A stretch of DNA of 64,000 bases, from assembly GCF_001194135.2 (NCBI RefSeq), contig NC_068983.1, forward strand, positions 53,404,280-53,468,279, given 5' to 3'. Under the pieces are notes generated by a model, which made no database searches, was not told the origin of the DNA, and worked only from the letters and a program-made list of their open reading frames with translations. The stretch is from Octopus bimaculoides. Its lineage: Eukaryota. The position numbers and the translations under genes were made by a program. Shown here piece by piece: positions 22,083-45,123 of the stretch. Each line of letters opens with the position of its first letter. The stretch's first letter is position 1.

Positions 22083-22244
22083 GTGCAGAAATGGCTATTG
22101 AATGGGTGAATGCAGACACGAATGTCCTGCCAAATCATGAGCTACACCTTTTAATAAAGGATACTCAATGTCGAACAGATGTAGCCATGCGTTCATTTAT
22201 CGACTTAGCTACAAATACCACTATTCCTATTGCTGGTATTCTCG
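22083..22244 (+). CDS. Coding exon A of a GABA-B-like class C receptor (Venus-flytrap domain, N-terminal part)
   Basis: Polypyrimidine tract plus AG at 22081-22082; donor G|GTAAGT at 22245; 162 nt, phase 1 to phase 1. Encodes (G)AEMAIEWVNADTNVLPNHELHLLIKDTQCRTDVAMRSFIDLATNTTIPIAGIL(G), matching the A.EMA...IN....LP.Y.L.L...D.QC pattern of ANF_receptor/GABA-B VFT domains. Confidence 0.93.
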
Positions 22245-24179
22245 GTAAGTAATTTCATTGCAGTCTTTCAGAATAAAAATTATTTTATTTTATTTCAGCC
22301 TGCTTCTTTTATAAATTTTAATAATCTGACTGCACTGTAAAATTAATATGGATTCCAGTGATAAATCATTTCTTTTGGCCAAACTTTCAAATAATAACAT
22401 AAATATTAAACCAAATAAAAACAACTGACAGATATATTTTTAGTGAGAATATTAATTCTCCCATTTATCAATCAATAATAGAATAACAGATGATTATGAT
22501 CTTCTGGTAAAACTACCTATTCAGTTGAGAAAATACATAAAAATGTTTTATTTCTCCTTCATGAGTTTTGAAAAATCATTGCTTATCCATTGAATAAAAA
22601 TATATTTGAATCTGTTAAAAAAGTATTTAAAATATAGAAAAACTATGTTGTTTTCAATAATGCTATATAAACCTGAACAATACTTCATCAAATAGACCAG
22701 AATCTTCTTCATATCAAAGTGAATTCTGCTGGTTTTCATGAAAGGGAATATCCTGAACAATAGATTTCAGGTCTATCAGATAAAAGTATCTATCTTCAAT
22801 ATTCACATGTTGCATTATTTATTAAACATTAAATAAACAGGGCTTCATTAACATCCATTTTTCTATGCTAGCATGAGTTGAATGAACTTTCATGTTGCCT
22901 TAATCTTATACAATCCTATCTGTAAGGCACAACATCCTGAAATTTCATATCACAAATTTTTCCCTTGTCTTTCTTCATATTCTTCTCTTACAAATTCCTA
23001 TCACTATCAGTGCACATCACAGATACATTCCGTAGCACAACCAGATACTTTCCCCAACACATTTTAATCCATTGGGTATTATTCTTTCACCTCATATCAA
23101 TAACAGTGAAATCGTTTCTCTTATTCACATTAGCTGCTGACGTTAAATGTCCAGTTGCTTCCTCAGCTCATTTGTGCACTGCCTTCTATGCAATTTGATA
23201 TTACACATCTGAATTCAATGTTCACTATCATGCAACATCACACATTTCATGTATGTGATAATCAGCTGTTGCCGAGGATCCTAAAATCATGTGACACTTT
23301 ATTCAATAAGAATGATATATATACGCTCTTTACTTTTAAGAACTTAATTTTGGCAGTTTATGTGAAGATACCTTTATCTAAAAAGATTCTATGCACAAGC
23401 AACAACTTTAAAGTTAAGCAAAGATAAATAAGGAGGAGGGAGACTTAATAGGATCTACACAATTTGCATATCTTTATCTTATCTGTAAAATTCATGCATG
23501 AGTTATTGAACAGATCTTTGTTTTGTTTTGATATTTAGTCTGATAATCTGATTCATGGAGAAATTTACTCTAATATATATGACAGAGTTACCATTTATCA
23601 GGCATAGATTACTCATCTAATACTAATTCTTTATAAGAGCATTTTTTTGTGTGTTTGTTTACCATATTTGCTTGCAATACACATTTTTTTTACCAGATTT
23701 TTAAATGTAAATATTAGAGCTGGTAGCAGACCTCACTTGTGTTGATGGCATGAAAAAAACTCAGGACACACTGTAAAATGGTTGGCATTAGAAAGAACAT
23801 CCAGCTGTAGAAACCATACCAATGCTGATTTGGGGCTCAACACAGCTCACTGGATCCTGTCAAACTATCCAACCCATACCAGCATGGAAAGTGAATGCTA
23901 AATGATGATCATGATGATTAGGGGTGTGCATTATACTCAAGAAATAAATCTAGCACATTTTTACTCCATCGACTGCATTGCCATATTCAGGATAGCATGA
24001 TCAGATAAAAGTTATTTGTATCTATTGTCCAAGCTTACAAAGGCTTAAAGATTATGTAAAATCGCAATTAAGTATTTTACATTTTTTTTCTGTGATAGCG
24101 ATAATTTATCAAAGAGTCAGCACAACTGGCACATGTTCTATGGAATTACCGCTATCACTCTTCAGTAAAGAAAGCCAGA

Positions 24180-24370
24180 ATGATTATTCTGTTAAGTGCA
24201 ATGCTTCTTTTATTCATATTGTTTCGTAGCTTCAAAACCTCAATGGTGTGAATGTTTACTTTTAGAAAGACATTGTAGGGTAGGTGTAAGAGGCTGGATC
24301 TGAAAAAATTGAACATAAAATTGATAGCGTATCTGGGGCAGATATGGCTGGTTTAAATGTTGAAGGGTAA
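24180..24370. mobile_element. Degenerate TTAA-type MITE, right part
   Basis: Ends ctggtttaaatgttgaagggtaaa, approximating ...TTTAAATGCTAAAGGG|TTAA; internal sequence resembles a common octopus MITE (recognised from memory). Confidence 0.45.
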
Positions 24371-24954
24371 ATTAAGTATATGAGATATATGGGAATAAAT
24401 AGTCAATTAGGATAGTGTCATTATTGAAATGTAACTATAAACAGGAAAAAAAAAAAACATTTGTTCTTGAAATACTGTCATTAATAAAATAAACCATCAC
24501 TATATATGTTTATAGTGAGAGAATACATAGACTTGATGGTAAAAGTATTTAAATGGAAGTATAATGAAAGTGTTTACATTCTGTATTATACTTTTTTTTT
24601 TTGTAATGTTCCATGCTAATAGACTCCTCACAGCAAATACACTTTCGCAGGCTAGACTAGAAAAGTTCAAAGGTCACTTTCGAATTTGCTTATTGTTTGA
24701 AGATATATGAACTCTTGTCAATGCAATTACATTATATCTAACAGACATAGCACTAAAGACAAATAGTGTGCATAATATATGAGAAATATTTTTTCCTGGC
24801 ATTTGATAGTTCGTAATTAGTGGTTTGCATTATATTATATATATAAATCTGTATTATTTGTAAATAATATGGTAGTATCTTGATGTTGTGATAATCACTT
24901 GCTTCTCATAGCAAATAAAACGTCAACAAAAGCAGTGACTATTCTAAAGCTTTT

Positions 24955-43254: not shown

Positions 43255-43842
43255 TTTTCATCTGTTTTTACATTCTGTGTTCAAATTTTGCCAAGGTTGA
43301 CTTTGCTATCCATCCTTTCGTGGGGTTGATAAAATAAGTAATAATTGAGTATGGGAGTCGATGTGATGGACCTACTCCTCCTCCGAAATTGCTGGCCTTG
43401 TGCCAAAACTTCAAACCAAAATTATTATTGCTATTATTATTATTATGCCAGTGTAAGGCATTGAGCTGACAGAATTGTTAACACAAAACGCTTAGCAACA
43501 TTTCTTCTGACTTTACATCCCAGTTTCAACTTTGCCTTTCATCCTTTTGGGGCCAAAACATTACAGTACCAATTGAGCACTGTAGCTAATGTAATCAACT
43601 AGCATCTCTCCTCAAGATTTCAGGCCCTGTGCACTTAGTAGAAAGAATTATTATTATGGAAATGTGATCACAGAATTGGTACAGTATTGGACAAAAATTC
43701 AGTGTGGTATTTAGTTATATCCCTCTACAGTCTAAGTTCATATCCCAAATTGTCAAATTTGTCTTTCATCCTTTCATAAATATGAATCAAGTAATAAATA
43801 CTTGCCCCTAAATTTCTGGTCTTGTGCTGAAGCTCAAAACTC
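43255..43842 (+). mobile_element. Three head-to-tail SINE family B copies separated by (ATT)n
   Basis: Copies at ~43255-43418, ~43455-43646 and ~43660-43842, each with the ttt(g)cctttcatcctt core and a ggcc(c/t)tgtgc tail. Confidence 0.75.
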
Positions 43843-44942
43843 TATTGTGTTATAACTTATTAACATTTAATGTTACAAACATTCAAAGTGAATCCTTGTT
43901 TTATTTGATTAACACTTACAATTAAAAGCCTAATAACTTTACAGATGCTAAGTTTAACAATACCCAGCTCTCTTTGTTTAGGTCTCACCACACATATTAT
44001 GAAAATTACACAAAAACTGTTGGATTTGTCTTCTTTGCTAAGAATCATTTAATGAAATACTGCTTTCACATCTAGACCAACCTATCTAAACAGTCACTCT
44101 TTGTGTTCTGTTGTTATAATCATTTTAACTCAGACAAGTATATAGAGGTCTTTGTGGATTATACTTTAATTATACTATAATAAAGAACTGATTACTTTTT
44201 CCATCATTCACTGATTATGTCTGTAGACTTTTTTTATTCCCTTGTATTATGGATTTTAATTAGATTTGTGTTAGAAAAATTTATCAAAAGGTATTCATTT
44301 AAGATAAAAAGAAATGTGTATTGAAATGAAACTGAGATTCCTTGTGGCTTAAGATCATTGACTGGAGAAAAATAATTTTCACCATAATTGAAGAGACTGT
44401 TAATCAAAATGTTTTTAGTAGTTAAGTGAAAAATCTATTTGTGTGTGTGTTTAATTATGGGAAATGTGACCACATATCAATATAAATTATTTTTCCACCA
44501 GAATTTACTTACATGTAAACACTGCCTATTTAGTGTTGTTAAAAACATATTGTAGTAATTCTTTGTAAGTAAACAACTCTGAACCAATTATTAAACTCTT
44601 CATATGAAAAATTATCAGCTTGCCTATATATCTTCTAGTAAAACTCAATTTATTTTCTTTGATTTTTGTATGAATAAAGCTAGTTACATATTGAATTTCA
44701 AAAAATTCAATATTTTTTTGTTAAATTCATTTTTCTCATTGAAGTAGGAACATTAATTGTATGTGTGTGTGTCTCACTCATGGAGGTTGCATTAAAATGT
44801 CTTAAATATTAACTGCATAATCAATGTTGCCCAAACAATTTCCACCATAAGCTTTTTGTTGGTTTTAAATAGACTTGTACTCATGTTAAATCACAAAGTT
44901 TATCCAATACATTTTAATTTAAATTTAAAAATTTTTTCCCAG

Positions 44943-45123
44943 ATATGTATACGAAAAATTATTTTTGGCTATGAACTGGCTGCAAATTGGGGCTATTGCT
45001 GAAGTTGGCAAAGAATTTACTGAGTACCACCGTCTTCTAAAAGATCATCTTCATTCCCGAGGCGTGTATATGATTGCACGCAATAAAATGATGAACAGCA
45101 GAGATCCTCTGGATTTGTCAAAA
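44943..45123 (+). CDS. Coding exon C of the same receptor (VFT lobe 1/2 transition)
   Basis: ttttttcccag| acceptor and AAA|GTAAGT donor; 181 nt, phase 2 to phase 0; joins exon B in frame (AG|A = Arg). Encodes YVYEKLFLAMNWLQIGAIAEVGKEFTEYHRLLKDHLHSRGVYMIARNKMMNSRDPLDLSK, with the L...M.W..I.A pattern of GABA-B-type VFTs. Confidence 0.93.

Follow-up and report, generated by a model that had tools for sequence, protein, structure and literature searches.

The 64,000-nucleotide stretch of the Octopus bimaculoides genome analysed here (assembly GCF_001194135.2, contig NC_068983.1, positions 53,404,280 to 53,468,279 of the forward strand), hereafter the window, carries three plus-strand exons (A, B, and C) that together encode approximately 165 amino acids (aa) of lobe I from a Venus flytrap (VFT) domain that is extracellular, with the rest of the gene lying beyond both window ends. 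We consider it very probable that these are internal coding exons of LOC106880693 and that this gene encodes the Venus kinase receptor (VKR) of O. bimaculoides. Knowledge of this family dates back to the 2000s. The octopus gene is already modelled in RefSeq, though unnamed or misnamed.

Three exons splice into a single VFT segment

Exon A (22083 to 22244, plus strand; 162 nt) encodes residues 428-481 of XP_052822135.1, the 1360-aa product of LOC106880693 isoform X4, which it matches at 100% identity by tblastn. A pyrimidine tract and an AG acceptor (22081-22082) lie ahead of it and a GT donor (22245-22246, within GTAAG) behind it, with the shared codons for Ser427 and Gly481 (XP_052822135.1 numbering) split at its borders. 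The exon contains the beginning of VFT lobe I, including the conserved Cys of the "DTQC" motif (C35 in VKR numbering). Intron 1 (22245 to 37216, plus strand) then spans about 15 kb and contains a 10-N assembly gap at 28062-28071. Exon B (37217 to 37370, plus strand; 154 nt; residues 481-532) is bordered by AG and GTGAGT; it carries "GPGC-T", in which Thr stands in for the ligand-contacting Ser66, "SYSA-G", in which Gly stands in for Glu92, and "YPYFFRTVP", which supplies Arg107, Thr108, and a Val at the position of Ile109. Intron 2 (37371 to 44942, plus strand), of about 7.6 kb, contains a further assembly gap at 37793-38259 and is followed by exon C (44943 to 45123, plus strand; 181 nt; residues 532-592), which is bordered by CAG and GTAAGT, carries the conserved Trp128 ("MNW"), ends in phase 0 before the GTAAGT, and is 100% identical to an independent Logan open reading frame (ORF).

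When joined, exons A, B, and C amount to 497 nt, i.e., two bases completing an upstream codon plus 165 stop-free codons in one frame. The spliced peptide reads AEMAIEWVN...GPGCTDEAEPIA...KYPYFFRTVP...DPLDLSK and matches the Pfam family ANF_receptor with an E-value of 1.5e-30. An initial annotation of this DNA, made from its letters only, had described three exons splicing into a stop-free VFT segment with DTQC, GPGC, and KYPYFFRTVP motifs, and this description was borne out, the exon borders being canonical AG/GT sites. The same annotation had called the segment GABA-B-like, which also agrees with our searches, as the best solved relative of the peptide is the GABA-B1 VFT (4.9e-20), followed by GABA-B2 and the metabotropic glutamate receptors. 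Over its whole length (165/165 residues), the peptide is identical to residues 428-592 of XP_052822135.1, an entry labelled "uncharacterized protein" in RefSeq, in keeping with the earlier suggestion of an uncharacterised cephalopod receptor.

Six runs of N interrupt the window, of which the two that fall within the gene segment described here are both intronic. At both junctions, the spliced peptide aligns with zero missing or extra residues to five VKR relatives (from molluscs and arthropods) as well as to XP_052822135.1, and there is thus no exon inside either gap; the assembly gaps hide no coding sequence, and the reading frame across them is of no consequence. The junctions themselves are predicted on the strength of gene models from four octopod species together with colinear, mRNA-sized bivalve contigs. 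Searches for further VKR exons, by tblastn with 16 VKRs plus octopus isoform X1 and by a VKR profile hidden Markov model (HMM) run on every stop-free fragment, on either strand, of 12 aa or longer, returned only A, B, and C within the window. The adjoining exons lie outside it: that upstream ends in "...GLIQS" (with which read-through of a Sepia fragment agrees) and is more than 22 kb away, and that downstream begins "IFADLRRNK..." and is more than 18.9 kb away.

With only three exons visible, set between very long, repeat-rich introns with assembly gaps, the segment could be taken for a decayed gene fragment, formed either of chance ORFs or of a VFT pseudogene copy. Such an origin is very unlikely, given canonical splice sites, an intact frame, 100% identity to an annotated protein, and the near-identity of that protein over 1360 aa across Octopus species and Argonauta. 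Very long introns are moreover usual in octopus genomes.

Architecture of the full-length receptor

XP_052822135.1 was retrieved by a profile search with the alignment of the closest relatives of the segment. Its parts follow one another in the order signal peptide, OpuAC/ProX-type domain (residues ~45-400), VFT (~405-800), hydrophobic segment, kinase (944-1208), and tail. In Pfam scans, residues 427-792 match ANF_receptor (1.3e-53) and residues 944-1208 match PK_Tyr_Ser-Thr (2e-86), with neither 7tm_3 nor Guanylate_cyc detected in this protein even at E <= 1. The kinase motifs GxGxxG (as GAGAFG), VAVK, HRDLACRN, and DFG are intact, and the best matches of the domain are the IGF1R/IR kinases (about 1.8e-82) and the kinase of Schistosoma VKR2 (7zvs; 1.2e-81). 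Between VFT and kinase lies one hydrophobic stretch, MAVILANVMAFGFFSIIISVVLIII (residues 878-902), followed by RQRY, which we judged by eye to be the transmembrane segment. The C-terminal tail of ~150 aa, ending in ...TVTSV, is without a domain match.

A VFT coupled to a tyrosine kinase is the architecture that defines VKRs (PMC2680970, PMC3703292), and we therefore assign the octopus protein to this family; the assignment leans on the 100% match and on domain content rather than on a tree. The initial annotation had pointed to a poorly studied invertebrate family in which a GABA-B-like VFT is combined with an extra periplasmic-binding domain and a nucleotide cyclase; the family is instead that of the published Venus kinase receptors (PMC2680970, PMC3703292). 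Of the domains that it had named as worth seeking in the full protein, ANF_receptor and (weakly) OpuAC were found, 7tm_3 and Guanylate_cyc were not, and the catalytic part proved to be a tyrosine kinase.

Two features of the C-terminal part can be recorded here. The activation loop of the octopod VKR (residues 1096-1115) reads "DFGMTRSLYESDFYKF"; the Tyr-Tyr pair that serves activation in nearly all other VKRs is replaced in it by Phe-Tyr, and it has an extra upstream Tyr that is not present in other molluscs. Also, four of five aligned full-length VKRs end in ...C(Q/E)T(V/I)T(S/T/A)(V/L), which resembles a class I PDZ-binding motif.

Relatives, orthologues, and competing identities

A HMMER scan of 1.84 billion representatives returned 1246 relatives of the 165-aa segment. 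The closest full-length relatives (47-53% identity) are about 1260-1400 aa long and match at residues ~400-590 rather than at the N-terminus; they derive from molluscs (Pomacea, Ylistrum, Patella), a tick, a weevil, and ants, and one relative from the ant Lasius already bears the name "venus kinase receptor". Seven of the closest full-length relatives were scanned, and in each of them ANF_receptor precedes PK_Tyr_Ser-Thr (1e-73 to 1e-86); none of these seven has 7tm_3 or Guanylate_cyc in Pfam at E <= 0.01. Clustering at 90% brings together octopus isoforms X1-X4, the O. sinensis/O. vulgaris orthologue, one protein of Argonauta hians, and a fragment from Sepia. All differences between the four isoforms lie near the N-terminus, outside the window region. 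The His of "HELHLL" and the string "MMNSRD" mark the window sequence as that of O. bimaculoides. From end to end, the octopod orthologues (O. sinensis/vulgaris, Argonauta) are nearly identical, which argues that the gene is under constraint. When the 165-aa peptide was used in a word-indexed protein search, no match was returned, and a database search with the octopus VFT returned five arthropod or unnamed fragments only, with no squid or cuttlefish VFT among them.

In a neighbor-joining tree of the 165-aa segment, the window sequence groups with octopod proteins (bootstrap 100%) beside other mollusc VKRs, and no seven-transmembrane (7TM) protein falls within the VKR group. Published analysis likewise places VKR VFTs as a clade beside GABA-B receptors (PMC2680970). 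A rival identity for the locus is an orphan G protein-coupled receptor (GPCR) of class C and of the GABA-B type, in which the VFT would be joined to a 7TM domain and respond to a ligand other than GABA. The GABA-B1 and GABA-B2 VFTs are indeed the nearest solved structures by sequence, and UniRef names some orthologues (from beetles and ants) "GABA type B receptor subunit 2". However, the identical full-length protein has no 7tm_3, with its one hydrophobic segment leading into a tyrosine kinase, and no 7TM-like exon was detected in the window. Furthermore, 7tm_3-bearing (GABA-B-like) relatives score 61-76 bits against the segment, compared to 93-214 bits for non-octopod relatives that bear a kinase; ten lower-ranking matches combine ANF_receptor with 7tm_3 and are thus true class C GPCRs. 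The GPCR identity is thus highly improbable.

Automatic names for the orthologues conflict with one another. They include "guanylate cyclase D-like" (O. vulgaris), "receptor-type guanylate cyclase gcy-5-like" (Nylanderia), "atrial natriuretic peptide receptor 2-like" (tick, Ostrea), "IGF1R-like" (Mya), and "Insulin-like peptide receptor" (Camponotus); all of the conflictingly named orthologues nonetheless have VKR architecture or belong to VKR clusters. The cyclase names, together with the pairing of ANF_receptor and a kinase-like domain in receptor cyclases, could be taken to favour a receptor cyclase (guanylyl or adenylyl) or a fusion of several sensors with a cyclase, which had also been proposed. 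Yet Guanylate_cyc is absent from the octopus protein and from its seven closest relatives at the thresholds given above. Isoforms X1-X4 likewise hold no cyclase domain, and the ~150 aa behind the kinase match none. The kinase retains all catalytic motifs and is closest to those of IGF1R/IR, unlike the kinase-homology domain of receptor cyclases. We accordingly give the cyclase reading next to no probability; the cyclase of the initial annotation matches wrong automatic names of the "guanylate cyclase D-like" kind. GPCR and cyclase readings were both rejected on domain content.

Some of the top-scoring matches (P0001, P0004, P0005, P0007) are 2500-3900 aa long with 6-10 VFT-like stretches, P0001 being a "CASR protein, partial" of Polypterus. 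These very long multi-VFT matches are probably tandem class C receptor genes merged by gene prediction.

The ligand pocket of octopod VKRs

The residue set that serves as a VKR signature comprises C35, S66, E92, R107, T108, I109, W128, GY(V/I)WFLPxWL, and Y406 (PMC3703292). Among these, Ser66, the alpha-carboxylate contact, corresponds to Ser505 of the Anopheles VKR, within "LGPACSETVEPIA", and its mutation to Ala abolishes activation by L-Arg (PMC6401105). We compared these positions across 34 VKRs, three of them octopod. At position 66, all three octopod proteins have Thr, whereas Ser is present in 29 of the 30 others that cover the site (the exception being Thr in a tick), one truncated protein being without it. 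At position 92, octopods have Gly (window sequence "SYSAGAASL"), a residue seen in no other member of the set; the remaining 31 VKRs have Glu (28), Asp (1), or Asn (2). Position 109 is Val in octopods and mostly Ile elsewhere. In the octopus protein, C35, R107, and T108 are kept and are invariant in the other VKRs, W128 is kept (Trp in the others, save Tyr in a spider), and so is the WFLP core of GY(V/I)WFLPxWL (WFLP in the others, except WFVP in three and WFFP in one). DTQC, FFRTV, and MNW lie within the window exons, with GYAWFLPAWL found at residue 631 of XP_052822135.1.

The initial annotation had further stated that agonist contacts of GABA-B1 are replaced by Thr, Gly, and Val, and our HMMER alignment to GABA-B1 reproduced these substitutions: C-S(130)-S aligns with C-T-D, G-S-S(153)-S with S-A-G-A, and R-T-H(170)-P with R-T-V-P, and all three motifs fit a single shift of 47 from chain index to GABA-B1 residue number. 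A pocket unlike that of GABA-B1 is, however, a property of the whole VKR family; what is peculiar to the octopus is the loss of Glu92. The accompanying statement that a Ser/Thr signature for amino-acid binding is "not evident" was too strong, since the Thr occupies the validated Ser position (Ser505 of AgVKR) and Arg107 is present. As Thr keeps the hydroxyl, function at position 66 may be retained. With Thr at Ser66 and Gly at Glu92, amino-acid recognition in the octopus protein may nevertheless be altered, even though Arg107 is kept.

Several points weigh against the assignment of the locus to a VKR. The window encodes only 12% of the protein, such that the predicted architecture is taken from the matching RefSeq model. 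The transmembrane segment was assigned by eye, and the VKR clade as a whole has a bootstrap of only 35% on the short segment used for the neighbor-joining tree. The activation loop with FY in place of YY and the Gly in place of Glu92 indicate that details of activation and of ligand binding, respectively, may differ from those of studied VKRs. The cephalopod receptor is, finally, a VKR predicted from sequence.

An OpuAC/ProX-type domain at the VKR N-terminus

The initial annotation had suspected an extra periplasmic-binding domain, and here it was right. Across the N-terminal regions (~400 aa) of 12 aligned VKRs, Pfam OpuAC (PF04069) was detected in 10, with a best E-value of 1.3e-7; the octopus domain itself reaches 21.3 bits where 21.2 is the cut-off, a weak match located at residues 279-385. 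When a profile of the 12 N-terminal regions was compared to the PDB, it matched the binder 4xz6, of the trimethylamine N-oxide (TMAO)/betaine type (8.1e-8), and lactococcal OpuAC (3e-4). The AlphaFold2 model of the octopus N-terminal domain has a mean predicted local distance difference test score of 78 and a predicted TM-score of 0.76. Among the best 50 PDB matches listed by Foldseek for this model, almost all are OpuAC, ProX, TmoX, DmpX, EgtU, choline binders, or sensors derived from them, the lowest E-value being 1.2e-13 and the target-normalised TM-scores ranging from 0.72 to 0.75. Several Trp residues (W161, W172, W181) are invariant in the VKR N-terminal alignment.

In the modelled structure, the ~400-aa VKR N-terminal domain, which lies outside the window, thus superposes on cluster F binders of the OpuAC/ProX/TmoX type, which serve bacterial ATP-binding cassette transporters and bind betaine, choline, TMAO, dimethylsulfoniopropionate, or ergothioneine. 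In such binders, an aromatic cage takes up the quaternary ammonium or sulfonium group. It differs from them in its low sequence identity (10-17%), in extra Cys-rich insertions, and in being fused to a VFT and a kinase within an animal receptor. The 2009 VKR paper found no other known domain, the VKR literature that we examined does not mention an OpuAC/ProX-type domain at the N-terminus, and no VKR paper was linked to OpuAC or betaine among the literature matches listed.

We thus offer a tentative proposal, which we hold to be possible though unlikely: VKRs, that of octopus included, would be two-sensor receptor tyrosine kinases, with an N-terminal domain binding a quaternary amine (such as betaine, choline, or TMAO) in front of a VFT of the amino-acid type. 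Alongside this, with the octopod VFT pocket changed, the ligand would have shifted away from L-arginine, or the receptor would have come to rely more on its N-terminal sensor.

Comparison with known receptors and proposed mechanism

VKRs were described between 2003 and 2013 in insects, flatworms, and other molluscs, the molluscs in the 2013 survey being Lottia, Crassostrea, and Biomphalaria only; no cephalopod VKR has been described in the literature that we searched. The octopus protein shares with the named members (SmVKR1/2 of Schistosoma, AmVKR of the bee, AgVKR of Anopheles, AaeVKR of Aedes, and LgVKR of Lottia) a GABA-B-type VFT, a putative single transmembrane segment, and an insulin-receptor-like kinase, in the same order, and has in common with them C35, R107, T108, W128, and GYxWFLPxWL. 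Its window segment is 38-55% identical to mollusc and arthropod VKRs. It departs from them in having Thr at the "strictly conserved" Ser66, Gly at Glu92, Val at Ile109, and FY for YY.

Relative to the GABA-B1 VFT (PDB 4mqe), the octopus segment has the same fold, with about one third identity over 152 aligned residues, and the two have in common the Cys, the "PGC" and "FFRT" motifs, and the topology of lobe I. They differ at the agonist contacts Ser130, Ser153, and His170 (Thr, Gly, and Val in octopus). The octopus protein is furthermore without 7TM domain or coiled coil, and its output is a tyrosine kinase rather than a G protein. With the insulin and IGF-1 receptors, the likeness is confined to the kinase, which lies outside the window and matches theirs at about 1e-82, with a DFGMTR...PVRWM activation segment; the ectodomain is unrelated, without L1/CR/L2/FnIII, the octopus receptor consisting of one chain whose ectodomain is a VFT.

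Among VKRs, SmVKR1 and the receptors of bee and Anopheles have L-arginine and other L-amino acids as ligands, SmVKR2 has Ca2+, and that of Aedes has the neuroparsin OEH; in insects and schistosomes, the receptors take part in oogenesis and in the growth of larvae (PMC4522560, PMC4026697). Domain order, catalytic motifs, and the VFT signature were established here for the octopus protein; its mechanism can be proposed by analogy to insect and schistosome VKRs (PMC2680970, PMC4522560, PMC4026697, PMC6401105). The octopus VKR would work as a dimer, in which ligand binding would close or reorient the VFT and the kinase domains would then phosphorylate one another in trans. Signalling would proceed via PI3K/Akt/S6K and MAPK, typically in the gonads and in larval or developing tissue.

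The correct name for LOC106880693 and its orthologues is thus VKR, and not guanylate cyclase, atrial natriuretic peptide receptor, GABA-B subunit, or IGF1R. In insects and schistosomes, oogenesis and the growth of larvae are under VKR control; a cephalopod VKR would be a candidate regulator of octopus reproduction. The finding is otherwise mostly ordinary, its new points being Thr66 and Gly92 of octopods and the N-terminal OpuAC/ProX-type domain; two leads follow from it, namely the octopod loss of Glu92 in the VFT pocket and an OpuAC-type N-terminal domain common to VKRs.

Gaps, repeats, and a transposase remnant in the window

A minus-strand ORF (38260-38631) directly adjoins the intron 2 gap (37793-38259) and reads "...WLRSSGLKAETEGFLIAAQDQSLPTRNY...", like the tail of a retroelement ORF, with no significant match in Pfam. 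As the gap abuts this retroelement-like ORF, it probably sits in a repeat, which would account for its presence. The assembly gaps outside the gene segment are located at 427-1127, 17774-17783, 20670-20846, and 61730-61775. Many microsatellite-like tracts of TA/CA type, seen in translation as runs of YIYIYI or HTHTHT, are spread over the whole window, the G+C content of which is 32.5%. Downstream of exon C, at 50436-51342 on the plus strand, lies a remnant of a mariner/Tc1-type transposase that is split over several reading frames; its longest ORF (50896-51345) matches Pfam Transposase_1 (3.1e-17), and a helix-turn-helix-like piece is found upstream.

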